This document shows positions 1,768-34,154 of a stretch of DNA of 64,000 nt, piece after piece. The stretch is taken from sequence record NC_047880.1; one strand, 5' to 3'. Both the position numbers and the translations under genes were made by a program. Positions within the stretch are counted from its first letter, which is position 1. Every line of letters starts with the position of its first letter. A model generated the notes under the pieces. That model was given only the letters and a program-made list of their open reading frames with translations. It had not been told where the DNA came from and made no database searches.

Positions 1768-2551
1768 AGGACCGTACGGCCTCGTTGAGACTGCCCAACT
1801 AATTCCCCGCTGGACTTACCCGATCAAGCACGGTCAGGTGAAGAGTGTTGATGCGTGGGAATTAAATACGTTAGAAAACATTGTAACGCCTGTTCGCATG
1901 ATCAACGATATTCATGTGATGCACAACAGAGAGTATGAGGACAATGAAGATGCAATCGACCTCGACGAAGACGCAGAAGCGCTGTCAAAGACTGAATCAA
2001 GACTTCTTATCAAGCCTCGACTCAATCAAATCCGAGCGCGTGGCAAGCAAGATCACATTAGTCCTGAAAACGTCTTCGACGTTGACTCGGAAGTAATCGA
2101 TCAAACGATAGACACAATCAACGATCAGGCTGCGAAGTTCCGCAAGCACTTCTTAGATTCAGTGTTTAGTCCAATACTTGGTTACGACATTGCTGCGGGT
2201 GAAGCCGAAGCGATTGCGCGTGACTGTCTTAAAACCGACTTAGAGATCGACAGCGAACTCGTTCCGTATATCGAACGTATCGGACTTGCCAACATCATCG
2301 GCAGTATGATGGAAGAAAGCAAGTCAGTGCCCGAAGCTGTTCGTGCTGACGTACTCAAAGACTGGCTTATCAAGTCGTTCGATGATATTCGTGCAGACCT
2401 CAAAGGCGATAAAACTTTCCACAAGATGAAAGCGCAGATGCGCAGACTGATGCACGGCAATGATGAACTCGTTGCTAAAGGTACAGGCATCGGTACAACT
2501 CGTGGTATGTCAGAAGTGAGAAACAGACAAAAAGAAAATGGCCAAGCCTAA
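1748..2551 (+). CDS. hypothetical protein directly upstream of terminase (small-terminase candidate by position only)
   Basis: ORF 1736-2551, likely ATG at 1748; overlaps terL start. Confidence 0.55.
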   Translation: MTTKKFEGPYGLVETAQLIPRWTYPIKHGQVKSVDAWELNTLENIVTPVRMINDIHVMHNREYEDNEDAIDLDEDAEALSKTESRLLIKPRLNQIRARGKQDHISPENVFDVDSEVIDQTIDTINDQAAKFRKHFLDSVFSPILGYDIAAGEAEAIARDCLKTDLEIDSELVPYIERIGLANIIGSMMEESKSVPEAVRADVLKDWLIKSFDDIRADLKGDKTFHKMKAQMRRLMHGNDELVAKGTGIGTTRGMSEVRNRQKENGQA

Positions 2552-5369
2552 GAAGGGCCCCGCCTTCACACTACGTCCTAAACGAATAGCTGCATTCGAT
2601 GCGCTGCTTGGTGACGACGTTGGTGTGGAGGAATCCTCAGACTTAGACTTCCTGTCTGATAATAATTCAAGCGGTATTAACTTCCTTGAGAAGGGCGAGA
2701 CAAACATTGTTGACTTGGTTGAGAGTGCTCTTGAACAGCGCACACTCGTACCACGCGACTTGAAGTTCGATGATAGCTCAATGCCTCGCGCAAAGAACTT
2801 CCTCGAATGGTGTACTAGCCCTGACTTCTTGAAAGCTGAACCGTATCTTGAGCAGGCCATGATCGGCCTTCGTTTGTTCGGAGAGATCTGTGTACGATGT
2901 TCCCCGAACTTGCAATGGCAACATACAGAAAACCACGAGCCGCAGGAAGGCGTCGCTGCTATTGAGAGGAATCTTCATCTTCTCCATAACGGTGTCTGCC
3001 CTCACTGCGGCGCTCGGCGTTCTGACATGATAAAAAAGGGAGAGATGAACTTCTACAACGAGCTGGCCGTGAATGCCGGACAACGTTGTGTTAGTGCTGC
3101 AACTCCTGTAACAACGCATAACGGTATCATGCCTATCGGTCATATGATGATTGGCCATGACAGCCCAGGCTTCCACAAGCCGCGTAACAAGTATCGTGCT
3201 CACAACGGACGTGAGATAAAGAAAGTCAGTCAAGTCTACGTGTCTACTGAAAGCCCGACACGTATCATTACGCTGTCTAATGGTATGCACTTAGAAGCAA
3301 CACACGAACATCCTCTGCGTACTGAAACAGGCTTTAAGAAAGCGCTTGTGATCACAGAAGGTGAACGTGTAGAAGTTGCTCTCGGTATAAACTCATGGGG
3401 CAAGATCATAACGCCTGTATCTATCTATGATGCTGGCCAGTCTACCCGTGAAGATGCCTTGCGTTATCTGACTGACAGATCGCTTCCGTTTAACAGCGGT
3501 TATATGTACGTCACTGACGACGAGAACGTTGCTCAGATGGCGTGGTCGATTCTGATTAACGCAGGCTACCTGCCGCAGATTAATCGTGACGACACGAAGA
3601 ACGAGTACAGCATTCTGTTTGATCTCAATGCAGAGTGTTTGAGACGTTCTGTGCATCTGCCTGTGATATCGAATGCAGAAGGTGAAACGAAAGTAACGTA
3701 TGACTTGCAGATGGAGGGCATGCCGCAGTTCGTGGCATCAGGTCTTATTCATCATAACAGCGGTAAGTCCGTTGTTGTTGCAATGATCTCAACGTATCTA
3801 ACGCATCGCCTGCTTATGTCGCAATCACCGACAGGCATCTTGGGTATCAGTAGCACAACTGTTCTTCACGGAACGTTCGTTGCTCTTACTCAGAAGCAAG
3901 CGTCTGATACACTGTGGACTCCGTACTTCAACTACGTGATGGGTAGTCCGTGGTTCCAAGCATATCATGATCTGATTCGCAGACACGAACGCAAGTTCGG
4001 TATTGAAGTGATGAAGGTTCGTGATACGTTCATTCTTTATGGTCATCGTAGTTTCGTTATTTATCCAGCAGGACCTGATGGTCGTATTCTTCGTGGTCGT
4101 ACACGTATACTCAGCGTAATCGACGAAGTGGCGTATTTCGACAACGACGCCCAATCCAAGAAAATCAAAGTCAGTGCCAACGCTGTATACGGAGCACTCG
4201 ACCGCTCACTCGCTACTGTTCGATCAGCAGAGAAGCGGCAAGTCGAGGCCGGATATGACGAAGCCTTCACGGGTTACTTCTGCAACATCAGTAGCCCGGT
4301 ACACGCTCGTGACAAAATCAACGAGCTGTTGCGTATGGCTTTAGGTAGTAAGACTCTGTTAGGCATTCATGCACCGACGTGGAAGATGAACCCAACCATG
4401 CCGCGTGATAGTGAGTTCCTGATAGAAGCATTCCGTCGTGACCCTGTAGGTGCAGCGCGTGACTATGGTGCAGAAGCTCCGTTGTCTGCAAGTCCATTCA
4501 TCACTCAGCCTACATTCATCTCAGATGCAATACGTGAGAAGGGTCGTAACCTGTGTCAGTACACGCATCATATCATTCGTCACAAAGACGGTGAGAGACA
4601 GCGTTACGGTAGTCTCGTTAAAGCTGCTTCGACAACTCGCGCTTCTATTCTCGCAATCGACGCAGGTTATTCGAATAACAGTTTTGCTTTGGTGACAGGC
4701 TCACGCGGTGATGATGGTATTATCAGCGTAGACTGTCTGGTTGAGATTGTGCCTAAGCCAGGTATACCTCTCAACTACACAATGATATTTGACGAACTGC
4801 TTATTCCTCTTTGTAAGTTGCGTAACGTGCGCGTGATGCTTGCCGACCAATGGCAGTCACTCAAGTTGCTACAGGATGCTAAACTCAAAGTTGAATCCAT
4901 CGAAGAATCTGATCAATACAGCCTGAAATATCAGGACATGTGGACAGTGAAGACGATGTTCGAATCGCAGCCGTCTCGCATTAGTTTGCCGCGCATGGTG
5001 AATACTAAGAATATCAATGAGACGTTGCAGTATGATGGTGATGAATATCCTCAGTGCTTTGAGAACAAGCCTACTGAACACTTGATCATGCAGTTGCAGA
5101 CAGTGCAAGATACTGGACGCAGCGTTATCAAGAACACAGGTGCAACAGATGACTTGTGGCGTGCAATGGCTCTCATGGTATACGGGTTCGAATGCGGTGA
5201 GTACGAAGACTACCTGATTAAAGCAGCGGAGACTTCTATCAACCGTGACCCGAATCGTCTTGGTCGTGTAGCGCACAGACTCAACTCAGGCACAGCAAGC
5301 ACAACACGCTCTGCTCTTCCTGGTCGAGTGCTAGGTTCAGCCGCTACTCGTATGCTTGGACGTAAGTAG
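2538..5369 (+). CDS. terL: terminase large subunit containing an intein
   Basis: After splicing Walker A reads NAGQR|SGKS; Walker B VIDEVAYF; coupling motif ISSP; RNase-H-like nuclease LAIDAG and terminal DDLWRA; followed by portal. Confidence 0.85.
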   Translation: MAKPKKGPAFTLRPKRIAAFDALLGDDVGVEESSDLDFLSDNNSSGINFLEKGETNIVDLVESALEQRTLVPRDLKFDDSSMPRAKNFLEWCTSPDFLKAEPYLEQAMIGLRLFGEICVRCSPNLQWQHTENHEPQEGVAAIERNLHLLHNGVCPHCGARRSDMIKKGEMNFYNELAVNAGQRCVSAATPVTTHNGIMPIGHMMIGHDSPGFHKPRNKYRAHNGREIKKVSQVYVSTESPTRIITLSNGMHLEATHEHPLRTETGFKKALVITEGERVEVALGINSWGKIITPVSIYDAGQSTREDALRYLTDRSLPFNSGYMYVTDDENVAQMAWSILINAGYLPQINRDDTKNEYSILFDLNAECLRRSVHLPVISNAEGETKVTYDLQMEGMPQFVASGLIHHNSGKSVVVAMISTYLTHRLLMSQSPTGILGISSTTVLHGTFVALTQKQASDTLWTPYFNYVMGSPWFQAYHDLIRRHERKFGIEVMKVRDTFILYGHRSFVIYPAGPDGRILRGRTRILSVIDEVAYFDNDAQSKKIKVSANAVYGALDRSLATVRSAEKRQVEAGYDEAFTGYFCNISSPVHARDKINELLRMALGSKTLLGIHAPTWKMNPTMPRDSEFLIEAFRRDPVGAARDYGAEAPLSASPFITQPTFISDAIREKGRNLCQYTHHIIRHKDGERQRYGSLVKAASTTRASILAIDAGYSNNSFALVTGSRGDDGIISVDCLVEIVPKPGIPLNYTMIFDELLIPLCKLRNVRVMLADQWQSLKLLQDAKLKVESIEESDQYSLKYQDMWTVKTMFESQPSRISLPRMVNTKNINETLQYDGDEYPQCFENKPTEHLIMQLQTVQDTGRSVIKNTGATDDLWRAMALMVYGFECGEYEDYLIKAAETSINRDPNRLGRVAHRLNSGTASTTRSALPGRVLGSAATRMLGRK
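3087..3758 (+). mobile_element. 224-aa intein in terminase Walker A, endonuclease degenerate
   Basis: Begins CVSAATPV (block A), has ATHEHPL (block B), ends GLIHHN followed by Ser +1; no intact LAGLIDADG pair. Confidence 0.9.
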
Positions 5370-12640: not shown

Positions 12641-13411
12641 ATGAGCAATGTAGATAAAACAATGCCTCAAGGTAAGTGGGAATTCAACGAGCCTGTTGCT
12701 GCTGTGTTTGATAACATGCTGGCCAACTCTATTCCTTCTTATGACCGTATGCGTGACCTGACGTTTCGTCTGGGTAAACGTTTCGTAACACCAGGCTCAG
12801 CTATTGTTGATCTCGGTGCATCACTCGGTCGTGCTATCGAACCATTCTGTGAACACTTCGGTCCGTACATGTATCATCATGCAGCAGACCGTCCTGAACC
12901 TGATTCTGAAACAGGCAATCTCTATTCGCTGTATGAGACTGCTCCTGCAATGCGTGAGCGTCTCGCACAGAACGCAGTGTTGAACGCAGCCGAAGCGAAA
13001 CTCGAATCAGAATCGCTTGTGGACGTTGATACGTTCCGTTTCAGTGAGCAAGTCGAATGCTCTTTGATTCTCAGCGTGTTAACTTTGCAGTTCACTCCGA
13101 TTGAACACCGTCAGCACATTCTGGAAAAGGTCTATGACTCTTTGCAGTCTGGTGGTGCATTCATTCTCGTTGAGAAAGTTCTCGGGGATGATAATTATCT
13201 GGACAAGCTGCTGGTAGATACCTACTACAGCATGAAAGGTGATAACGGTTATTCACAAGAAAGCATTGCGACTAAGCGCAAGTCACTCGAAGGTGTTCTC
13301 GTTCCAGTGAAAGCCGCGTGGAATGAAGAACTGCTCCGTAAAGCGGGCTTCAATCGCGTCGAATGTTTCTATCGCGATCTCAACTTTGCAGGTTGGATTG
13401 CTGTTAAATAA
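12641..13411 (+). CDS. cmoA: CmoA-like carboxy-S-adenosylmethionine synthase
   Basis: WEFNEPVAAVFDNMLANSIPSY matches CmoA N-terminus [42 protein letters not shown] with Arg213 (codon 13277) aligning to E. coli catalytic R199. Confidence 0.85.
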   Translation: MSNVDKTMPQGKWEFNEPVAAVFDNMLANSIPSYDRMRDLTFRLGKRFVTPGSAIVDLGASLGRAIEPFCEHFGPYMYHHAADRPEPDSETGNLYSLYETAPAMRERLAQNAVLNAAEAKLESESLVDVDTFRFSEQVECSLILSVLTLQFTPIEHRQHILEKVYDSLQSGGAFILVEKVLGDDNYLDKLLVDTYYSMKGDNGYSQESIATKRKSLEGVLVPVKAAWNEELLRKAGFNRVECFYRDLNFAGWIAVK

Positions 13412-13436: not shown

Positions 13437-14309
13437 ATGAGTTCTACAGCGGCCATACGCGAGAAAGTTCGCTCGGCATTATTTGCGAGTCATAACAAGC
13501 CTGTCGATATGCGACAAGCGTTGATGGACACTTTGAGTTGGATTCCGAAAGAAGACCAAGTTACTGTGTTCATGTCGGGTGGCATTGATAGTCATGCTTG
13601 CTTGTTTGCTTGCATCGACCTAGGCCTCAAAGTTAACGTGCTGTCGTTCACACTCGACTCACACGAAAGCTCTGACTTCAAGGCAGCGAGACACGCAGCC
13701 GAAGTTTTCGACCTTGACTTCACGCCGATTGTTCTTCCAACGAACGAAGCCCATCTGAAAAGCTGGGTACGTTTCGCAGTACACAAGCTCGGGCTCACGA
13801 ACAAAAGTGAGATCGAATGTTCTTGGCCGCTGTACACCGCAATCCGTCATCTTGAAGGAAAGACCAAACATATCGTACTCGGTCTTGGCGGCGACTCGTA
13901 CTTCTTAATGGCAAAGAGCGCTTCGATGCACTGCAAAGACTTAGTGTTAGAGCAACGTCGAAAAGCTACGCGCCGTGTGCTGTCTCAGAACGTTCTCGTT
14001 AAGCGTGAAGCTTTTGCTCGTGGTATCTACGCGCATCTTCCGTACTTCGAGTTCGGTCGCACTTACGCAGAGCTGCAAATGGAAACCGACTTTAAAAAGA
14101 TCAACAGTCCGCAGAAGTCGTTTTACAATCAGGCATTCCCTGAGTATCGCAAGCGCTGTAAAGTACGCGGCCACCAAAACTTCCAGCTGGGTGACACTAA
14201 CATTAGCGGCATCTTTAGCGACGTGTTGTTGAAGTCCGACTGGAACACAAGAAACTTGAAAGCAATCGTTGGCGTATACAATGACGTTGCATCAGGAATC
14301 TGTAAATAG
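13437..14309 (+). CDS. PP-loop ATP pyrophosphatase, asparagine-synthetase C-terminal-like; probable amide ligase (CmoY-like)
   Basis: FMSGGIDS PP-loop; LGLGGDSYF resembles GEGADELF; no glutaminase domain; adjacent to cmoA. Confidence 0.75.
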   Translation: MSSTAAIREKVRSALFASHNKPVDMRQALMDTLSWIPKEDQVTVFMSGGIDSHACLFACIDLGLKVNVLSFTLDSHESSDFKAARHAAEVFDLDFTPIVLPTNEAHLKSWVRFAVHKLGLTNKSEIECSWPLYTAIRHLEGKTKHIVLGLGGDSYFLMAKSASMHCKDLVLEQRRKATRRVLSQNVLVKREAFARGIYAHLPYFEFGRTYAELQMETDFKKINSPQKSFYNQAFPEYRKRCKVRGHQNFQLGDTNISGIFSDVLLKSDWNTRNLKAIVGVYNDVASGICK

Positions 14310-14593: not shown

Positions 14594-15232
14594 ATGTCTT
14601 TTGAGCTTGTAAACATTCTGCCGATACTGTCGCAATCAACTACAGTTCATCGTGCAGCCGACGGCACTGATGTTCACATCGTCCGAAACTTCTTCACACA
14701 TACGGAATGCGAAGCACTAATCGCTGAGGGCATTCAGTATCTCGAACCGAGCCGTGTTGGTGGACCGAACGATACAACTAAGATCGATAAAACAGTTCGC
14801 TCGTCCTCTACTGCGATGTTAAGCGAAGTATCTCAACACCCTGCTGTACTCGAAGCTATTCGTCGCATTGATGACGCATACGGTTACCCACATCTGTTCA
14901 GCAACCCGCTGCAACTCAATCGCTATCAAGTCGGTGAAGAGTTCGTAGCGCATCACGACTGGCATGACCCTGTTCGCCAGCATGATCGTATTCAACGTGA
15001 AGGCCAACGCACTTGGACCTTCTTGATGTACCTCAACGATGACTTCGAAGGCGGTCAGACTGAATTCCCGTTGATGGATCTCACAGTAACTCCTGAGCGC
15101 GGTATGCTTGTTCTGTGGAACAACTTGCTTGTTGACGGTTCAGTCAATGAGACAACGCTACACGCATCGAAGCCTGTAACGTCAGGTACGAAGTTCATGA
15201 TGACCAAATGGTTTAAGAACAAAGTGCTGTGA
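14594..15232 (+). CDS. 2OG-Fe(II) oxygenase, prolyl-4-hydroxylase-like
   Basis: LQLNRY-x-x-G-x-x-F-x-x-HHD (HxD), TFLMYLND-x-x-EGGQTEFP, LHASKPVTSGTKF; Lys as the 2OG ligand, as in P4Hs. Confidence 0.9.
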   Translation: MSFELVNILPILSQSTTVHRAADGTDVHIVRNFFTHTECEALIAEGIQYLEPSRVGGPNDTTKIDKTVRSSSTAMLSEVSQHPAVLEAIRRIDDAYGYPHLFSNPLQLNRYQVGEEFVAHHDWHDPVRQHDRIQREGQRTWTFLMYLNDDFEGGQTEFPLMDLTVTPERGMLVLWNNLLVDGSVNETTLHASKPVTSGTKFMMTKWFKNKVL

Positions 15233-18607: not shown

Positions 18608-19450
18608 ATGACAGCAATAAGCCCAATCCGATATCAAGGAAATAAGCGCAGCCTAATACCCTTGATTTTAGAGAACGCTCCTTCTGTTAAGGACTGTTCT
18701 CGTTTCATTGATGCGTTCGGCGGTAGTGGTACTGTCTGCTTGAATATGCCTCAACCGTTTCGCGTGTACAACGAACTCAGTCCTCAGGTGTTTGAGATCG
18801 TCAAGATGCTGTCAGAGCAAGACCCGAAGAAAACTCTGTCACAGATTAAGCGTGTTGTGAAACACTGGGCGCTGACGAACAGTAGTGAGACGAGTTACGA
18901 CGACTTCCGTGTTCACGTCCAGAAGAAGCGTACCCCGTTACTGCATTATGTTGCGCACAGACACTCACACTCCAACATGCTACGCTTCAATCAGCAAGGC
19001 ATATACAATGTGCCGTTCGGTGCTCGTGGTCTGATTGGAAAGTTCGATGAACTTGAGCATGAGCTTGTGCAATTCCATGAGCGTATGCAGGGTGTGCATC
19101 TGACTAACCTGCGCTACAATGACTTGCTCGGTCGAGTGAATCACCAGCTTAACAGCAACACGTTCTGTTACTTCGACCCACCGTATCTGGCAAGTGGTGC
19201 AATGCAGTACGGAAAGTGGACTGAACGCAATGAGCGTAACCTGCTTTCGATGCTGGAACATCTAACTCGCCTTGGTGTTCCGTGGATGTTGAGCAACGTT
19301 GTCGAGCACAGACACTTCAAGAACGATTTGTTGAAACGTTGGTTGAAACGTTGTGCAACGACCGTACTCTATCCGAATAAAACATACGCACTGGCAAATG
19401 GTCAAGGCGGTTCACACGGTACTGTTGAAATTTTAGCAATGAACTACTAA
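18608..19450 (+). CDS. dam: DNA adenine N6-methyltransferase (Dam/D12 class)
   Basis: SPIRYQGNK, FIDAFGGSG (motif I), YNVPFG, YFDPPY (motif IV), MLSN. Confidence 0.9.
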   Translation: MTAISPIRYQGNKRSLIPLILENAPSVKDCSRFIDAFGGSGTVCLNMPQPFRVYNELSPQVFEIVKMLSEQDPKKTLSQIKRVVKHWALTNSSETSYDDFRVHVQKKRTPLLHYVAHRHSHSNMLRFNQQGIYNVPFGARGLIGKFDELEHELVQFHERMQGVHLTNLRYNDLLGRVNHQLNSNTFCYFDPPYLASGAMQYGKWTERNERNLLSMLEHLTRLGVPWMLSNVVEHRHFKNDLLKRWLKRCATTVLYPNKTYALANGQGGSHGTVEILAMNY

Positions 19451-21718: not shown

Positions 21719-22103
21719 CGACGATGCAGTCCGCAAAATGTATCAAGCCCGCAACCAACTCGTTGAACAGAAGATGCGAGAAATCTGGGCTATGCGTGGT
21801 TGGACTATTGATTGGGACTGGCATTGTGGATTTTGTGACGATGCCGAGTTCTTGTTTGATACTGAGGGCAAGCGTCTATATCCCATAGAAAACGGTATTC
21901 CTCATGAGACGTCAATCGCTACGTTGCTGGACAAGCATAAGCTGAATGTCACGTACATGAAGAAAACTGTAAAGATCATAAACAAGCAAGCTGATAACCC
22001 TGTTACGGGGTCTGGTGATTGCATTTATATGGCATACATCAATTGGCTACTAGCTTTCGAAAAGCAGAAATTTGAGGAGAAGAATAAGTGCGCTGCGAAT
22101 TAA
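21687..22103 (+). CDS. hypothetical protein
   Basis: AAGGA RBS. Confidence 0.55.
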   Translation: MYQKLDTKKPDDDAVRKMYQARNQLVEQKMREIWAMRGWTIDWDWHCGFCDDAEFLFDTEGKRLYPIENGIPHETSIATLLDKHKLNVTYMKKTVKIINKQADNPVTGSGDCIYMAYINWLLAFEKQKFEEKNKCAAN

Positions 22104-22606
22104 CCGAACTGCCTATCGCTGTCGATCAAGCAGAAGCAATCATGGCCAGCGTGTTTGCTTTGGCGGTTGCTTCTAAATCAAAACGGCGTGCTACTGCTGC
22201 AATGATGATTCAATTCATTGACGGCTTTCCGATGATCAAAAGCAGCGGCGTTAACGGTACTGTGCCGGGTTCGTCAAACGTTTGTGAAACACCAGACCTG
22301 CTGACAACGCTGCCTCATGTTATTCATGCGGAAGCGAACTGCCTCGACCGTCTGAATGACTACAACTCTCTGGTGACTGACCAAGACATTCTGTTTTGTA
22401 CAGACAGTCCGTGTCCAGATTGTTTGCGTCAACTGACAGACGAAGGCGTTAAGACCGTTGTGTATGCGCGTGAGTATCGCCTGACTGATCATCTCGACGC
22501 TTCTGATATTCGCATGTTCTGCCTCGATCTGAAAGCTGTTGAACAGCGCATGATTCGCAGCATCGAACGTATGTCGGAAGTTATCTCTGCAACACCGAGT
22601 GTCTAA
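22088..22606 (+). CDS. dCMP deaminase-like (cytidine deaminase fold)
   Basis: SSGVNGT, HAEANCL, SPCPDC zinc motifs. Confidence 0.85.
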   Translation: MRCELTELPIAVDQAEAIMASVFALAVASKSKRRATAAMMIQFIDGFPMIKSSGVNGTVPGSSNVCETPDLLTTLPHVIHAEANCLDRLNDYNSLVTDQDILFCTDSPCPDCLRQLTDEGVKTVVYAREYRLTDHLDASDIRMFCLDLKAVEQRMIRSIERMSEVISATPSV

Positions 22607-26645: not shown

Positions 26646-27746
26646 ATGTCAAAACAAATGCTTGACCTCCGCAACCCTCAGGACTTTGCTTTCTTTAACA
26701 TGCACAGTGCTGATGGCCAGTACATCTCTGTGTGTGACACTATCCTGCGTGAAGGTACGCTTGAGTGGGATGCAGCACGTACAGACGATCAGTGGCAGAC
26801 AATCATCGGTGTGGGTATGCAGTTGGTCAACACGCTGATCGCTTTCCCTGCGTTGCTGTCTGCGCGTAAGAACTGGGTAGCAGCCGTTGATGAAATGTGC
26901 TGGATGGCTCGCGGCGAAACGAATATCAAAACCCTGGGCTCTAAAATCTGGGACGAGTGGGCTGACGAAAACGGCGAGTGTGGTCCAATCTACGGTGAAA
27001 TGTGGCGACGTTGGCCTGATGTGAAAGCGTTTTTCGATGCAGCTGGTGCTTTACCTGCATTGTGGTCTCCTGATCATATTCGCAATCAAGCGGAAATCTC
27101 GCGTATGCGTGAAGACGGATATCTCGAAACTCCTATGTCCGACGGTCGCATTCTGTTTGAAGGTCAGATTGACCAGTTCGCTAACGCACTCGAATACATC
27201 ATGGCGCGCTCTCGCTCTCGTCGTATTCGCGTTCAGGGATTCAACCCGTCTTATGTGAACATGCAGGGTCTGCCTCCGTGTCACACAGAGTTTGAATTCA
27301 ACGTTACTCAGGCGACTGATTACGAAACCGCACAAATGAACTGGCGTGGGTTCGCACCTCAGAAAGACAGTCTGCATATCACTGTGCAATTACGTTCTAA
27401 CGACTGCCTACTCGGGCGCCCCTTCAACATCATGGGCTACAGCGCCATGCACCAGTTGATTGCTAAGTGGGCTGGTCTGAACGTCGGTAGCTTCACGTTG
27501 AACTCGACGAACACTCACATCTATACTCACCACGTTGAAGCGTATAAAAAGCAGCGTGAGCAATACGTCGAACTCGAAACGCAGATGAAAGAGACAGGCA
27601 ATCCGATTCAATATCCGTTGCTGGAAATCTCTGATGAAGTGCTTGGTCTGACTGCAAAAGAACTTCTCGATAACGTGAACATCGACTGGTTCCAGCTTCT
27701 CGACTATTCCCCTAAACCTGCTGTTCGTGGACGGGTGACTAAATGA
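26646..27746 (+). CDS. thyA: thymidylate synthase
   Basis: IWDEWA, GPIYGEMWR, SRRI, GLPPCH, RSNDCLLGRPFN, HIYTHH. Confidence 0.92.
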   Translation: MSKQMLDLRNPQDFAFFNMHSADGQYISVCDTILREGTLEWDAARTDDQWQTIIGVGMQLVNTLIAFPALLSARKNWVAAVDEMCWMARGETNIKTLGSKIWDEWADENGECGPIYGEMWRRWPDVKAFFDAAGALPALWSPDHIRNQAEISRMREDGYLETPMSDGRILFEGQIDQFANALEYIMARSRSRRIRVQGFNPSYVNMQGLPPCHTEFEFNVTQATDYETAQMNWRGFAPQKDSLHITVQLRSNDCLLGRPFNIMGYSAMHQLIAKWAGLNVGSFTLNSTNTHIYTHHVEAYKKQREQYVELETQMKETGNPIQYPLLEISDEVLGLTAKELLDNVNIDWFQLLDYSPKPAVRGRVTK

Positions 27747-28390: not shown

Positions 28391-29271
28391 TGCGTTTACT
28401 CTCATACATCCCAGCTGCAACGACTGGCGTATTCCGTACGTTGCGTGTTCTCGACCTCGGACTTGAACCGAGTAGCGTTGAAGAACTGAAATTGTTCAAC
28501 TGCGTCTTTAATAATGTTGAAATCGTTAGCACCGAAGTGCCAGGCGTCTCCGACATTCTTATCCGTGATGCGTATAGCTGGCGTGTCGACCCTCACTTCA
28601 TTCGTCTCGATGCTGAGTACAGTTACTGGTGTGGTAAGCATACGCCTTCCATTGAGCAGATGCTTGATGCGCATATCATGAAAGGTCATGTGCCGGATTT
28701 GATCGCGGACTTCGACCAATTCATTGCGTGGCTCAAAGCAGAACTGGCGAAGCTGCCTCGTGTTGCTACAGACGACCTAAAGTTCGCAGGCTCTGAGATG
28801 AAGCACGGCAATAACCGTTACGACTTGTGGTTGTTGTTCAAACACTATCTGATGCTTGACGGTCAGATGACTCTCACGCACAGTCCTGAAAACGATATCG
28901 GCGTTAGTGACCTGTTCATCTCTGATAAGGGTGTGCGCTGGTGGTTGGTTGAGCACAACAAAACGCTGATGGGCATTGCACATTCATCTAACATGCTGGC
29001 TGCGTATATCACGTTTGATACTCGTCGCGGTGCACACTATTCGTTTGTGTATGATGATGGCCAGACAGTTGTACGCCACGTCGATGAATCAGAATTCATG
29101 CACATGGCCGTTCACGGACAATTCCCGAAAGTATCTATCACTGAGTCGGACACTGTGTACGATCTCAACTTTGACTTCGCCGAGTTCTTCACTGAGAAGT
29201 ATCACAAGTACAACAACCACGTATTCATTGGCGGTCACAGTGAAGCTCGCGACCTTGTGCGCTTCATCTGA
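28390..29271 (+). CDS. hypothetical protein
   Basis: TAATG coupling. Confidence 0.6.
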   Translation: MRLLSYIPAATTGVFRTLRVLDLGLEPSSVEELKLFNCVFNNVEIVSTEVPGVSDILIRDAYSWRVDPHFIRLDAEYSYWCGKHTPSIEQMLDAHIMKGHVPDLIADFDQFIAWLKAELAKLPRVATDDLKFAGSEMKHGNNRYDLWLLFKHYLMLDGQMTLTHSPENDIGVSDLFISDKGVRWWLVEHNKTLMGIAHSSNMLAAYITFDTRRGAHYSFVYDDGQTVVRHVDESEFMHMAVHGQFPKVSITESDTVYDLNFDFAEFFTEKYHKYNNHVFIGGHSEARDLVRFI

Positions 29272-29289
29272 CGGCTAGGCCTCTTGTAC

Positions 29290-29297
29290 AGTAATTT
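29290..29297 (+). promoter_or_regulatory. AGTAATTT motif
   Basis: Intergenic, before AGGAGG RBS. Confidence 0.5.
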
Positions 29298-29320
29298 AAT
29301 CTAACCAAACAGGAGGCCGT

Positions 29321-29656
29321 ATGAATTACGACAAAGCAAAAGATTTTAAACCGTTCAAGTATCTCTCACCTCCTTCTGAGGCACCAGTGCGAGGCTTCTA
29401 TGGTACTGTCACTCGTTTGCGCACACTGGACGTTAACATAAACGAAGATACAGCCGAGTTCGTCTTTACTAGGGAAGAGTTAGACTCAATGGATCGAGGA
29501 ACACTGACGTTTCGCGCTAAGGACAGCGGAAGCTCTATCGCAATCAAGAAATGCTCTGTGTCTGGTTTGAAAATGGTAATTACGCTTGAACGAAGAGTGT
29601 TGAACTTCGGTAAAGTCCAAGTCGAGTGGAAGAACGTCGTCCACTATGAATGGTAA
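29321..29656 (+). CDS. hypothetical protein
   Basis: AGGAGG RBS. Confidence 0.65.
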   Translation: MNYDKAKDFKPFKYLSPPSEAPVRGFYGTVTRLRTLDVNINEDTAEFVFTREELDSMDRGTLTFRAKDSGSSIAIKKCSVSGLKMVITLERRVLNFGKVQVEWKNVVHYEW

Positions 29657-29658
29657 TA

Positions 29659-29668
29659 ACTGTAAATA
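29659..29668 (+). promoter_or_regulatory. CTGTAAATA motif upstream of ParB-like and C5-MTase genes
   Basis: Intergenic. Confidence 0.55.
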
Positions 29669-29702
29669 CAGAGCATTCAGTAACTCATAAAGAGAATGTA
29701 CA

Positions 29703-30407
29703 ATGGCAAAAATTGCTAAAGCAAAAGCAAAGGACGGGAAAAAGAAAGGCGCTATGGCTATTGATTTGAAATCTTTCAAGTCGGCTAAACAGCTTAAAGG
29801 CGCTAAGTACAATCCACGTTTCATTACAGACAGTCGCTTGAGCGCACTCGAAAGTTCGTTGGGTAGCTTCGGTGACTTGTCTGGCATCGTGTTTAACAAC
29901 AGCGTCAGTTCAGGCGTTCTTATCTCCGGTCACCAGCGTCTCAAGTCCATCAACGATTGGGAAACGCGCATCGAACTCCAGCCTACTTCTGACAAGTACG
30001 GTACAGTCGCTTTGGGTTACGTTCATGCAACGCATCCGAAGTCGAGCAAGACGATTAGCATTCCTCTGCGTATCGTAAACTGGAACGATAAGAAAGCCGA
30101 GTACGCTGCGAACATTGCTGCGAATGCGCACGGCGGTGAGTTCGATAACAAGAAGCTTGCGAATCTGGTTGAGAAACTTGACCTGACTTCAATCAAGCCT
30201 CAACTGCTCGGACTCGACCCGCTGGAAATCCGTGGTCTGCAACAGAAGCTGAAATCACAAGCACTTGTTGAAGGCGAGAAACGCGCAGGCAAAACTACTG
30301 GTCAGATGAACGGTAGTACGGGCGCATTCAAAGAATACACACCAGATGAAGTCGGCGATAAGCTGTCATGCACCTGCCCACGCTGTGGATTTAAGTTCGA
30401 GGGATAA
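29703..30407 (+). CDS. ParB/sulfiredoxin-like N-terminal domain protein with C-terminal Zn ribbon
   Basis: KYNPR...SFG...IVFN...LISGHQRL; ends CTCPRCGFKF. Confidence 0.8.
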   Translation: MAKIAKAKAKDGKKKGAMAIDLKSFKSAKQLKGAKYNPRFITDSRLSALESSLGSFGDLSGIVFNNSVSSGVLISGHQRLKSINDWETRIELQPTSDKYGTVALGYVHATHPKSSKTISIPLRIVNWNDKKAEYAANIAANAHGGEFDNKKLANLVEKLDLTSIKPQLLGLDPLEIRGLQQKLKSQALVEGEKRAGKTTGQMNGSTGAFKEYTPDEVGDKLSCTCPRCGFKFEG

Positions 30408-30408
30408 T

Positions 30409-32538
30409 ATGATCATCAAGCCGCCTACAATGAAAGAGATCAACGCGCAAGACAACAAGTGGCGTGGCATGAGCTTCTTCGCAGGCTGTGGTGGTTCTTC
30501 TACCGGTCTCAAATGGGCCGGTATTAACATCATCTTGAGTAATGAGTTCGTAGACGTGGCGCGTGAGTCTTATCAAGCGAACCACCCATCTACGTTAGTT
30601 CTCCCTCACGATATCCGTCGTCTCGACCCGAAGAAGATTATGCAGCACTTCGGGATGGGTAAGGGTGAACTTGATTTCCTCGATGGTAGCCCACCATGCT
30701 TCACTGAGAACACTCTGATTCACACTGCTGAGGGGATGAAGTTCATCTCTGATGTTAATGTCGGCGACATGGCAATGACTTCTGTTGGTCGTTATCATGA
30801 AGTGTACGATACTATGGTGCGTCCTTATGTTGGTACGATGCACAAGATCGAAACACTGCTCGGCTCGAACAACGCAACGCCTGAGCATCCGTTCTTCATT
30901 CGCCGCGTTCAACCTACTGGCTTGTGGTCTGAACCGTTCTGGTGTGATGCGAAAGATGTACAAGAAGGTGATTTACTCTCAACACCTCGAACAACTCCAG
31001 ACATGGGCGCTGACGCTTATCATGGTCAAATGTCATTGCTGACGCCTGTCATTCAGAGCTGGGTAACTTACCCTGAGTTCTGGTGGGCTATCGGTCATTG
31101 GTGTGCGCACGGTACACTTGAAGTTGTGCAGGGTGTCGATGTTGTTAGCTTCGAATCACACACAGCTCAGGAAAACGATCTGATTGAGCAGGTGTTTGAT
31201 GTTCTGAAAATCAGTAGCATCAACAGCGTAGACACAACCGTTGATCAGCGCAAGACCTATCGCGTTGTCATGGATTCAGAACTGTTCGCGTTCCTGAGCA
31301 AGTTCGTGGCACAGGGTAAGAACAACCTGTCTCGTCGTCTGCCGTCGATGATCTTCCACTTAGCTACTGAACTGAAACAGCAATTTATTCTCGGCTATCT
31401 CGGTCGTGACTACGTTAGTGCAATGGGCATGAGCCAGTTAATCAGCACAGACAACCGTCGCTTCCTCGCTGAGATGAATTACCTGACGTGCTCTGCATTC
31501 AACAGACCTCTGTTCGATGGTATGTTGTTCTCTGATGTGAACTACGGTTCAGCGCTTACGCCTCGTGATCGTAATCAGAAGAAAGAACATGTTGGTTATC
31601 TGCTGCTGCAAGATGAAAACAATTTCTTCTACGAGTTTAACGATAACGATCCACATCTGTGGGTTCAAGTGATCGAGAACCTCGCGTATCAGACAACCTG
31701 TGACGTGTACAACTTCTCAGTCAGTGAAGACGAGACGTATGTGGCGAACAGCATTGTCGTGCATAACTGCAAAGGCTTCTCGACGGCTGGCGTGAAAGAA
31801 GAAGGTTGGGGTAAAGAAGTCAAGTACAGCGAGAACAAGAAACAGCAGGTTGATGACCTGTTCGATCAGTATTGCCGTATGATCAGTGGCTTCCAGCCTA
31901 AAGTGTTCACAGCGGAAAACGTCAGTGGTCTTGTGAAGGGATCTTCTAAAGGTTACTTCCTTGAGATCATGAAAACGTTTGACGAGCTGGGCTACTATGT
32001 CAAAGCACCGTTGATTAACAGTGCATGGCTTGGTGTTCCACAGTCGCGTGAACGTATCATCTTCATGGGTGTGCGCAAAGACGTTGCACATGCGTTGGGT
32101 TATCGCTCAATCGGTACTGCTGTGCCTGCTGTCGTGCCTGCTTCTAGCATGGCTGTGCTTGCTGATGCTCTGCCTAACATTCTGCGATACAAATCGGCTG
32201 AGAAAGATATCATTAAGTATAAGCCCGCGATGAACGGACCTATGCCTACGATAACTGCTGCTGATGCGATTGCGTATGAGACGGCACGATTCTCTTCTGC
32301 TGGGTTTATCGAAGACAACAAGGGCATTCGTCGTAAGCTTACGATTGATGAACTGAAAGTTGTTTCCGGTCTACCTGCTGATTACAAGCTGGTCGGTAAG
32401 TTCGAACAACAGTGGGAACGTCTCGGTCGTATCTGCGTACCTCACATGACTCATGCTGCTGCGACTGCGTTGATCAATCATATTCTTGTGCCTTACGCCA
32501 AGAAGAAGAAACAGAAACCGGGCGCTCTCTTCCGTTAG
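30409..32538 (+). CDS. C5-cytosine DNA methyltransferase homologue with intein; probable carboxymethyltransferase (CmoX-like)
   Basis: FFAGCGG (I), GSPP|C (IV), AENVSG (VI), QSRERIIF (VIII), motif X reads LGRICVP in place of GN(A/S)VP. Confidence 0.85.
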   Translation: MIIKPPTMKEINAQDNKWRGMSFFAGCGGSSTGLKWAGINIILSNEFVDVARESYQANHPSTLVLPHDIRRLDPKKIMQHFGMGKGELDFLDGSPPCFTENTLIHTAEGMKFISDVNVGDMAMTSVGRYHEVYDTMVRPYVGTMHKIETLLGSNNATPEHPFFIRRVQPTGLWSEPFWCDAKDVQEGDLLSTPRTTPDMGADAYHGQMSLLTPVIQSWVTYPEFWWAIGHWCAHGTLEVVQGVDVVSFESHTAQENDLIEQVFDVLKISSINSVDTTVDQRKTYRVVMDSELFAFLSKFVAQGKNNLSRRLPSMIFHLATELKQQFILGYLGRDYVSAMGMSQLISTDNRRFLAEMNYLTCSAFNRPLFDGMLFSDVNYGSALTPRDRNQKKEHVGYLLLQDENNFFYEFNDNDPHLWVQVIENLAYQTTCDVYNFSVSEDETYVANSIVVHNCKGFSTAGVKEEGWGKEVKYSENKKQQVDDLFDQYCRMISGFQPKVFTAENVSGLVKGSSKGYFLEIMKTFDELGYYVKAPLINSAWLGVPQSRERIIFMGVRKDVAHALGYRSIGTAVPAVVPASSMAVLADALPNILRYKSAEKDIIKYKPAMNGPMPTITAADAIAYETARFSSAGFIEDNKGIRRKLTIDELKVVSGLPADYKLVGKFEQQWERLGRICVPHMTHAAATALINHILVPYAKKKKQKPGALFR
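30697..31767 (+). mobile_element. 357-aa intein inserted at the catalytic Pro-Cys; degenerate LAGLIDADG blocks
   Basis: Starts CFTENTLI; ATPEHPF block B; ends VYNFSV...IVVHN then Cys +1; WAIGHWCAHG and FILGYLGRD are decayed endonuclease motifs. Confidence 0.9.
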
Positions 32539-32549
32539 TGAGGTAGATT

Positions 32550-32648
32550 ATGTTTTGGACTGGACTAGCTGTAGGCATCGTCATCGGAATCGTGGTGACA
32601 CTCGGTGCTCTCGCGTATCTGTTCAGAGACTTCCGCGTGTTTCGTTAA
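32550..32648 (+). CDS. 32-aa single-pass membrane peptide
   Basis: MFWTGLAVGIVIGIVVTLGALAYLFRDFRVFR; GAGG RBS. Confidence 0.6.
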   Translation: MFWTGLAVGIVIGIVVTLGALAYLFRDFRVFR

Positions 32649-32683
32649 CGCACATGGACAAGGAAGTCCATTGAGGATTCACA

Positions 32684-33256
32684 ATGAGCTATTTGATTAA
32701 GAAAGATTTCGTTATCGCGTTTGTCCACGACAAGCGTATGCAAAGTGCTAAAGTCCGACTGAAACTGTCAGGGCTTGATTCAACGTTGCTGTTCAACCAA
32801 CTCGCAGCGTTTGATCGTATGACTGCCTATCAACTCGTATGTACTCAAGCCGAGAGCATTGATAGCAGTATCGTACTGCCGCAGTATCAGCAACATTTAT
32901 CTCTGGTCGAAGGTTCAGACCATGTGTTTAAACGCATCGAACAACTCCTTGCAGTTGATGGCGTTAAGTGTCGTGTGGTTCATCTCATTGATCGTGCGTC
33001 GAATACAGCAAGCGTGTTCTGGACCAACCATTCAGGTCATGTATCTGTGAGTGTGCTCGACACAGATAAAGAAAGCCTGAACAAACAAACAATTTTTGTG
33101 CGTGACAAACGCTTGGTAGAGAACCTCAATTACGGTACTCACATCCTCGTGTCTGAAAACACGTATGAAGTGGACGACGGCTTGCTGTGCAATAACATGT
33201 ACACGCTGCATAGCCGTGACGCAGAAATCCTCGTTATGAGAGAAAAGCAAAAATGA
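32684..33256 (+). CDS. hypothetical protein
   Basis: GAGGA RBS. Confidence 0.6.
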   Translation: MSYLIKKDFVIAFVHDKRMQSAKVRLKLSGLDSTLLFNQLAAFDRMTAYQLVCTQAESIDSSIVLPQYQQHLSLVEGSDHVFKRIEQLLAVDGVKCRVVHLIDRASNTASVFWTNHSGHVSVSVLDTDKESLNKQTIFVRDKRLVENLNYGTHILVSENTYEVDDGLLCNNMYTLHSRDAEILVMREKQK

Positions 33257-33453
33257 TGACGTTGTGCCTTGTAATCCTGTTCCTCGCATTCATCTCCGCA
33301 ATTTTAACGTCTGATACTTGGCGCGACGTTATGTACGCTACGCCAATGTTTTTCTTCGCTATCGCTGGCATCATTATCGTTGCACTGTTCTACGTGATTA
33401 AATATCTGGTTAGTACCGTGTGCGATAAAGCTGCTCCTTATTTCAGGACCTAA
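33253..33453 (+). CDS. small two-TM membrane protein
   Basis: Two hydrophobic stretches; ATGA overlap. Confidence 0.65.
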   Translation: MMTLCLVILFLAFISAILTSDTWRDVMYATPMFFFAIAGIIIVALFYVIKYLVSTVCDKAAPYFRT

Positions 33454-33455
33454 TC

Positions 33456-33593
33456 ATGACTGAAACACACATGCTGTATATTGGTCTTGCCCTACTCCTC
33501 GTGATACTTGGAGTTGTCGGCACTGTGCTGTACTGCGTGTTACGCGCTGTTAATTCGGTAGGTAAAGCAATTATTAAAGGCTACGTCCGCTAA
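33456..33593 (+). CDS. 45-aa membrane peptide
   Basis: MTETHMLYIGLALLLVILGVVGTVLYCVLRAVNSVGKAIIKGYVR; AGGA RBS. Confidence 0.6.
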   Translation: MTETHMLYIGLALLLVILGVVGTVLYCVLRAVNSVGKAIIKGYVR

Positions 33594-33769
33594 TGAGATA
33601 TGTCATAATCTTTGCGCTAACGTGGCTTCTCGCTTCATACTCACTATCAACTCTGGACGTCAGTGTTGAGAACTCCAACTCACTCGGTATCATCATCGCG
33701 GCACTAGTTGTCATAGGTGAGTGGCATTGGCTGAAAGCTATTAGGAAAAGTAATGAGCAAAAACACTGA
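33593..33769 (+). CDS. 58-aa two-TM membrane peptide
   Basis: TAATG coupling; MRYVIIFALTWLLASY...GIIIAALVVIG. Confidence 0.55.
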   Translation: MRYVIIFALTWLLASYSLSTLDVSVENSNSLGIIIAALVVIGEWHWLKAIRKSNEQKH

Positions 33770-34154
33770 TATTCTGGACGAGTACGGTTTTGACTACCAA
33801 AGTGGTTACGTTCGTTTTCGTCGTGCTGAGATGTTGTCTGCGTTTCAGTTCCATGTTCGTGAAATTCGTGAAGTCCAGATACATAGCGGCTTGGCTACAC
33901 GTATCAGTGACAACGAACAAATTCCTGTCATCCGTGTTCATATTGATCTGATCGGCGGTGGCACCTGTAACTCTGGTCCTATGCACCCTGAACTTGATGC
34001 AGAAGAAGCTGGTCAGTTGGCCTATGCGTTCTTACGTCTGCGTGACGGTGCGTGTGGCCTTGACGAAGTTTCGTATGAAATCAAATCAGTGAAGACTGAG
34101 TTCTACCCTAAAGTATACGTCAACTGGGATCTTCCAGTGACACCCGCTGAGTAA
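33753..34154 (+). CDS. hypothetical protein
   Basis: AGGA RBS. Confidence 0.6.
   Translation: MSKNTDILDEYGFDYQSGYVRFRRAEMLSAFQFHVREIREVQIHSGLATRISDNEQIPVIRVHIDLIGGGTCNSGPMHPELDAEEAGQLAYAFLRLRDGACGLDEVSYEIKSVKTEFYPKVYVNWDLPVTPAE

Follow-up and report, generated by a model that had tools for sequence, protein, structure and literature searches.

Does a phage gene annotated as a DNA-cytosine methyltransferase encode an ordinary methylase when an arginine stands where enzymes of this class carry an asparagine, or does it transfer a different group from a different cofactor? The question is raised by gp050 of Erwinia phage vB_EamM_Y3 (hereafter Y3; KY984068.1 / NC_047880.1, 261,365 bp, genus Sasquatchvirus), which we analysed within bases 1-64000 of this genome, the 64-kb window referred to below. 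In a megablast search, positions 29000-34000 matched this genome with 100% identity and with identical coordinates. The gene spans positions 30409-32538 on the plus strand and encodes 709 amino acids (aa) as annotated; RefSeq labels it 'DNA-cytosine methyltransferase', and PHROGs files the whole intein-containing protein under phrog_36001, 'unknown function'. Judged by homology, key residues and gene context, gp050 is very probably a CmoX-type DNA cytosine C5-carboxymethyltransferase that would mature from a 709-aa precursor by loss of an intein. Its reading frame divides into three parts, all on the plus strand: a CmoX N-extein of 96 aa (30409-30696) with motif I (FxGxGG), cofactor-binding residues and the 'SPP' of motif IV; an intein of 357 aa (30697-31767) that runs from Cys1 (CFTENT...) to ...VVHN and has a degenerate LAGLIDADG-type endonuclease-like middle domain; and a CmoX C-extein of 256 aa plus stop (31768-32538) with the catalytic Cys codon (31768-31770), motifs VI (ENV) and VIII (QSRER), the target-recognition region and motif X. 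The spliced protein would comprise about 352 aa.

The residue at issue lies on the C-extein, in motif X (WERLGRICVPH, 32413-32445, plus strand). A preliminary description of this DNA had read the motif as WERLGRICVP with the Arg codon at 32428, and translation of 32413-32442 (tgg gaa cgt ctc ggt cgt atc tgc gta cct) returns exactly these residues, followed by His at 32443-32445. The Arg codon, CGT at 32428-32430 in place of the canonical Asn, specifies residue 695 of the mechanical open reading frame, 674 of annotated gp050 and 317 of the spliced protein. The same description had equated this Arg with the motif X Asn, and two programs agree with it. With the C-terminal part as query against the PDB, HMMER/phmmer placed 'lgRicvph' on 'fgNSVVIN' of M.HhaI, ending at chain residue 309 and so setting the Arg on Asn304; the same search set it on Arg350 of PDB entry 8YF3 ('vgRmvppl'), and MAFFT likewise aligned it with Arg350.

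Entry 8YF3 is SpCmoX, the DNA cytosine C5-carboxymethyltransferase of Synechococcus phage S-B43 (Nat Commun, Dec 2025; PMC12783734). In that system the phage CmoA produces carboxy-S-adenosylmethionine (Cx-SAM), which can come from phage or host CmoA; SpCmoX moves the carboxymethyl group onto cytosine C5 in GC motifs; and CmoY, an Asn-synthetase-like ligase encoded beside SpCmoX, attaches glycine (PMC12783734). Arg350 of SpCmoX replaces Asn304 of HhaI, contacts the carboxymethyl group/carboxylate of Cx-SAM in the crystal, and was explicitly related by the authors to engineered M.MpeI N374K; the wild-type enzyme used Cx-SAM only, and the R350N variant used neither S-adenosylmethionine (SAM) nor Cx-SAM (PMC12783734). 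Applying two search criteria, the same study counted 5,615 database proteins with SPPC plus Arg, frequently in association with CmoA, ligases and ParBc proteins; its supplements mention neither Erwinia nor inteins and do not contain the residue numbers of the glycine pocket (PMC12783734). The Arg determinant is therefore not new, the CmoX family having been described in late 2025. The protein gp050 is a new, uncharacterised member of that family, for which public annotation (PHROGs, RefSeq) lags behind the CmoX paper, and it is distinctive by its intein at the catalytic cysteine, its split gene layout and its unusual tailoring cassette.

When spliced in silico, gp050 matches SpCmoX with an expectation value (E) of 2.5e-66, at identities ranging from 35% (BLAST) to 41% (global alignment). 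The SPPC motif, the adenine/ribose contacts Phe25, Glu47, Phe48 and Asp69, and Arg350 are all identical in the two proteins. The junction of the spliced product reads GSPPCKGFS, SPP closing the N-extein and Cys opening the C-extein, and both ENV and QSRER are present. Searched separately, the N-extein finds as its best PDB match residues 17-97 of 8YF3 (E 2.6e-18), the alignment stopping at Pro97, next to the catalytic Cys98, and the C-extein again finds 8YF3 (E 3.6e-33) as well as the dcm model TIGR00675 (E 2.9e-24); the ordinary C5-methyltransferases HaeIII and HhaI match the exteins at E 1e-9 or worse. An AlphaFold2 model, built from a 40-sequence alignment for the intein-containing precursor and not for the spliced protein, gave a predicted local distance difference test score mostly between 85 and 95 over the exteins. 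Its best PDB fold match, bridging the intein, is also 8YF3 (E 1.6e-16, target-normalised template modelling (TM) score 0.74), and later matches are M.HhaI (TM about 0.52), HaeIII and M.MpeI (0.41-0.43). With M.HhaI and canonical bacterial C5-methyltransferases gp050 shares motifs I, IV, VI, VIII and X and, as predicted, the catalytic mechanism, but it carries Arg in place of Asn304, and the similarity of its C-extein to these enzymes falls mostly within motifs IV-VIII. The target-recognition region diverges from that of SpCmoX too, so that GC specificity cannot be assumed for the Y3 enzyme.

How much may be read from the Arg itself is clarified by engineered enzymes. In M.MpeI N374K and M.MedI N377K the cofactor carboxylate finds its partner in a basic residue that replaces the motif X Asn, as proposed for gp050; these enzymes differ from gp050 in carrying Lys rather than Arg and in having been engineered from CpG methyltransferases, and they are distant relatives, M.MpeI (4DKJ) both by sequence (E 1.3e-4) and by fold (TM 0.43). 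M.MedI-N377K retains full methylation with SAM, and M.MpeI-N374K also still methylates with SAM. The rule invoked in the preliminary description, that a basic residue at this position converts the enzyme into a carboxymethyltransferase, thus holds as regards the pairing with the carboxylate and fails as a proof of exclusive Cx-SAM use. By analogy with these enzymes, the Arg would indicate that Cx-SAM can be used, and the case for exclusive use would rest on homology with SpCmoX. The broader proposal that gp050 uses Cx-SAM and is not an ordinary methylase gains support, since the combination of the Asn-to-Arg change with CmoA is the published CmoX determinant (PMC12783734) and gp050 is a clear homologue. 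The accompanying prediction that an Arg-to-Asn mutant would switch the product to 5-methylcytosine (5mC) appears improbable, because the corresponding R350N variant of SpCmoX is inactive with both cofactors.

The Arg is shared by most relatives of gp050 and follows the presence of cmoA. We fetched the 80 nearest IMG/VR loci with a C-extein profile and scored CmoA within the fetched flank. At the motif X position 76 loci have Arg, three have Asn and one has Leu, and CmoA was found in the flank of 68 of the 70 intein-free Arg loci as against none of the four non-Arg loci (Fisher p = 3e-4 over all loci; p = 1e-5 when the six Erwinia-like loci, with cmoA beyond the fetched flank, are left out). 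Flavobacterium phage FpV9 has a homologue, 32% identical, with Met at the motif X position, and a CmoA search had no match in Flavobacterium phages. Across the 40-sequence alignment, whose relatives were picked from Arg-type loci, the Arg is invariant. On these comparisons the motif X Arg is more than a chance substitution: it is invariant in that alignment, it prevails among the IMG/VR relatives and it tracks with cmoA.

The CmoA postulated in the preliminary description is indeed encoded in the same genome. The gene gp017 (12641-13411, plus strand), already named carboxy-SAM synthase in GenBank KY984068.1, encodes a CmoA homologue that we predict to supply the cofactor. It matches E. coli CmoA (4GEK, E 5.7e-29), the TIGR00740 CmoA model (E 2.4e-41, below the curated cutoff) and phrog_4752, and is 28% identical to SpCmoA (E 4e-25), a validated enzyme that is equally divergent. 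It keeps Arg199, Glu164, Tyr39, Asp62, Gly64, Ser66 and Phe137, and in E. coli CmoA Arg199 forms a salt bridge with the cofactor carboxylate (PMC3663124). In a MAFFT alignment the Arg199 column holds Arg in Y3, AD1 and PaBG, and Glu flanked by Lys in SpCmoA (our locus L003, 7294-7989) and in the CmoA of S-CRM01 (locus L010, 2015-2710); since SpCmoA is active, either the alignment is shifted by one or two residues there or the carboxylate is bound differently.

The immediate upstream neighbour of gp050 is gp049 (29703-30407, plus strand), a ParB-like (ParBc) protein matching phrog_620 (ParB-like, E 1.6e-32). The gp050 start codon lies one nucleotide after the gp049 stop, and the two genes are probably translationally coupled; promoter and terminator scans around the pair gave scores at or below shuffle expectation. 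The ParB-like/CmoX pair recurs in AD1, Yoloswag, pEa_SNUABM_1, pEa_SNUABM_5, fHe-Yen9-02 and PaBG, that is, in every inspected relative with a ParB-like gene. Day et al. listed a methyltransferase (CmoA), an Asn synthase, a 'transcriptional repressor' (the ParB-like protein) and a DNA-cytosine methyltransferase in both Y3 and AD1, and the related Dickeya phage JA11 lacks all four (PMC6143709 Table 5). The radical SAM protein Y3_272, encoded outside the window, has the same distribution, being shared by Y3 and AD1 and absent from JA11 (PMC6143709). In Pseudomonas phage PaBG (locus L004, 122002-132700) the genes form a cluster in the order ParB-like, intein-free CmoX (335 aa, with Arg), CmoA, hypothetical protein and ligase; the tRNA genes clustered about 3 kb upstream of it include tRNA-Ala(UGC).

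CmoA-made Cx-SAM is also the cofactor of CmoB, the tRNA U34 carboxymethyltransferase, in which an Arg is proposed to recognise the carboxylate; CmoB is, however, an unrelated acceptor enzyme acting on tRNA, and Y3 has no homologue of it. Searches of phage records with E. coli CmoB found none in Y3 or elsewhere save on one 3.4-kb 'phage' fragment, whose product is 93.5% identical to E. coli CmoB and which we take to be host DNA. No tRNA genes were found in the window. A phage-borne CmoA-CmoB tRNA pathway was rejected, there being no CmoB in any genuine phage record.

What sets gp050 apart from SpCmoX is the 357-aa insertion before the catalytic Cys, which, as long as it splices, does not count against membership of the family. 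Alignment with the intein-free homologues of PaBG, Mcat8, S-CRM01 and S-B43 bounds it between ...GSPP and CKGFS..., that is, between Pro96 and the catalytic Cys, so that the +1 residue of the intein is the catalytic Cys of the methyltransferase. The insertion has the features of a class 1 intein, namely Cys1 (CFTENT...), a block B TPEH (TxxH) and the VVHN|C end, and its C-terminal region matches TIGR01443 with 23.7 bits against a cutoff of 15.6. Sequence searches of the intein against the PDB gave marginal matches only (E > 0.1), and its type was recovered by fold search alone, which matched the middle part, modelled with low confidence, to the TliVMA intein (7QSU) and PI-SceI (1VDE).

An intein is conserved at this site in 55 phage records. 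The same intein occupies it in 48 Erwinia and two Dickeya phage records and in one Yersinia phage, and E. coli Asteriusvirus records hold a distant one (22% identity). Of the 80 nearest IMG/VR relatives six alone carry the Y3-type intein, the Erwinia-like genomes of about 260 kb. Its junctions are invariant, and no member has lost Cys1, TxxH, the terminal HN or the +1 Cys. The ratio of nonsynonymous to synonymous substitution rates (dN/dS) of the intein is about 0.09-0.15, as estimated from closer pairs such as AD1/pEa_SNUABM_1, because dS is saturated (>1) in most pairs, including those with Y3; the least saturated pair, AD1 versus pEa_SNUABM_1, gives 0.10 in the exteins and 0.09 in the intein. 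By these estimates exteins and intein are both under purifying selection, and the invariant junctions together with the low dN/dS argue for a spliced, functional product. In the LAGLIDADG-like motifs, located by alignment in a part of low model confidence, the first catalytic position is His, Arg or Asn and the second Asp or Cys. The intein is probably fixed rather than mobile, because these motifs appear to have lost the usual acidic residues.

The insertion site is not specific to CmoX. Escherichia phage UE-S1, an Asteriusvirus, encodes a C5-methyltransferase with a canonical GN motif X, presumably an ordinary methylase, in which an intein with a homing-endonuclease-type domain interrupts the identical Pro|Cys site (GGFP|C...VVHN|CQAWS; locus L097, 2770-4650); the Y3 and UE-S1 inteins are about 22% identical. 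Judging from these sequences, inteins seem to have settled repeatedly at the Pro|Cys of motif IV in cytosine methyltransferases of jumbo phages, and none of the titles and abstracts returned by a literature search dealt with inteins in phage cytosine methyltransferases. A further intein is indicated near the start of the window. The terminase large subunit gp004 (2538-5369, plus strand) is unusually long, at 943 aa, and its residues 184-262 match the intein N-terminal splicing region model TIGR01445 above cutoff, so that the window holds at least two inteins; terminase inteins were reported for this phage group in the PaBG paper.

Several observations weigh against the assignment of gp050 as a spliced carboxymethyltransferase. 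Its identity to the characterised SpCmoX is just 35-41%, and gp017, at 142 bits, stays below the curated equivalog cutoff of 193.3 of TIGR00740. The cmoA gene lies 17 kb from cmoX, unlike the adjacent genes of S-B43 and PaBG. Splicing is deduced from sequence features, the intein part of the AlphaFold model has low confidence, and saturation confines the selection estimates to the closer pairs. Because the engineered Asn-to-Lys enzymes keep their SAM activity, the Arg by itself does not establish that Cx-SAM is the sole cofactor. Against this background three other readings were considered. The persistence of SAM activity in M.MedI-N377K and M.MpeI-N374K would suit an enzyme that takes both cofactors and deposits a mixture of 5mC and 5-carboxymethylcytosine (5cxmC), which we nevertheless regard as unlikely, since wild-type SpCmoX took Cx-SAM only and every Cx-SAM-contacting residue named in the CmoX paper is conserved in gp050.

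It is more improbable still that gp050 is an ordinary SAM-dependent enzyme producing 5mC, with an Arg that is neutral or contacts DNA and a CmoA that serves tRNA modification or SAM depletion. All general C5-methyltransferase motifs are present, cmoA is distant, and SAM depletion by CmoA was raised as a question in the CmoX paper (PMC12783734); but the closest characterised homologue is SpCmoX, which uses Cx-SAM only, the Arg co-varies with the presence of cmoA, and CmoA, ligase, ParB-like and CmoX genes are present together or absent together. A tRNA role for CmoA is further countered by the absence of CmoB from phage records and of tRNA genes from the window. Least probable of all, and hardly to be expected, is that the intein-split gene is a non-functional relic whose precursor never splices and yields no active enzyme. 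The poor modelling of the intein and the missing acidic residues of its endonuclease-like domain would fit such a relic; degeneration of the endonuclease, however, touches homing and not splicing, and a relic would hardly combine intact Cys1, TxxH, terminal HN and +1 Cys in every member with a dN/dS of about 0.1 in exteins and intein alike, or be retained in about 50 genomes along with CmoA and ligase. A CmoX-type carboxymethyltransferase matured by intein removal is the reading that we retain.

If gp050 is such an enzyme, it would act as follows. The intein between the Pro-Pro and the Cys of SPPC would have to leave before the enzyme could work, the +1 nucleophile of splicing being the catalytic cysteine of the methyltransferase. 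In the spliced enzyme this Cys would attack cytosine C6, whereupon C5 would accept the carboxymethyl group from Cx-SAM, with Arg674, the equivalent of SpCmoX Arg350, forming a salt bridge with the cofactor carboxylate where ordinary C5-methyltransferases carry Asn. The phage CmoA, gp017, would make Cx-SAM out of SAM and prephenate, and host CmoA might contribute to the supply. The resulting 5cxmC would probably be turned into an amide by gp018 and perhaps then be acted on by gp020, both described below. The likely purpose of the modification would be to shield phage DNA from host restriction.

Directly downstream of cmoA, in the order known from S-B43, lies gp018 (13437-14309, plus strand), which encodes a CmoY-like ATP-dependent amide ligase of 290 aa. 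It has an Asn-synthetase-type PP-loop domain with SGGIDS at residue 47 and no glutaminase domain, matches TIGR01536, QueC and LarE weakly, and is 27% identical to SpCmoY (E 1.6e-21). A little further on, gp020 (14594-15232, plus strand) encodes a prolyl-4-hydroxylase (P4H)-like 2-oxoglutarate (2OG)-Fe(II) oxygenase with an HHD motif (P4H entries 3ITQ and 5HV0 of the PDB, E 1e-23), which we include in the modification pathway by context, as a possible extra tailoring step. Y3 thus resembles S-B43 in having a phage CmoA and an Asn-synthetase-like ligase without CmoB, and the wider CmoX family in its association with ParBc proteins. It differs in that the three genes form one cluster in S-B43 whereas in Y3 cmoA and the ligase gene are separated from cmoX by 17 kb, in the pairing of a ligase so distant from SpCmoY with a P4H-like oxygenase, and in its host, an enterobacterial plant pathogen rather than a cyanobacterium.

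Within the Erwinia/Dickeya clade CmoA and CmoX keep an identity of 80-88%, and the gene or genes right after cmoA form a variable cassette. In Y3, pEp_SNUABM_52 and Yoloswag this cassette consists of a Y3-type ligase, a small open reading frame and the P4H-like 2OG-Fe(II) oxygenase; in AD1 it consists of a DUF1611 protein and a ligase 21% identical to that of Y3; and in pEa_SNUABM_35 it holds a third ligase, 32% identical to that of Y3. The ligases of these sister phages are mutually 20-35% identical, so the joined amine may differ from glycine. A ligase of the Y3 type always adjoins a P4H-like oxygenase, in three independent contexts (Y3, Yoloswag and Salmonella phage Sen-NF). This distribution suggests, as a lead and not as a result, that the amide put on 5cxmC varies from one sister phage to the next, with an additional oxidation in Y3. 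Taken together, and offered as a tentative proposal that is rather doubtful as a whole, Y3, pEp_SNUABM_52 and Yoloswag might make an undescribed hypermodification, a 5cxmC amide with glycine or another amine that is then oxidised by the co-inherited oxygenase; AD1, with its DUF1611 protein and other ligase, and pEa_SNUABM_35 might build other adducts on the same CmoA/CmoX chassis; and the intein, with its catalytic +1 Cys, might act as a post-translational gate on the start of carboxymethylation.

These data extend the 5-carboxymethylcytosine pathway, as predicted from homology, from a cyanophage to a whole clade of jumbo phages of about 260 kb. New here are the 357-aa intein conserved in about 50 Erwinia and Dickeya jumbo phages and the variable ligase cassette, whose associated oxygenase hints at a different final adduct. 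With Erwinia amylovora and Dickeya solani as hosts, members of the clade are candidates for the biocontrol of fire blight and soft rot; their DNA is likely hypermodified, which bears on how they evade restriction, on their host range and on the sequencing and cloning of their DNA. Through the intein at the catalytic cysteine one could study how a DNA-modifying enzyme matures in dependence on an intein, and the ligase cassette, which diverges rapidly, offers a handle for finding new amide adducts.

Other genes of nucleotide and DNA metabolism are present in the window. Thymidylate synthase is encoded by gp045 (26646-27746, plus strand; 366 aa), in which ThyA models match two stretches, approximately residues 25-126 and 173-364, which points to some 45 inserted aa and to a protein longer than the usual 264 aa. 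A dCMP-deaminase-like gene lies at 22088-22606. Finally, gp029 (18608-19450, plus strand) encodes a Dam-family N6-adenine methyltransferase (TIGR00571, E 2.6e-32), and Y3 DNA therefore probably also carries N6-methyladenine.

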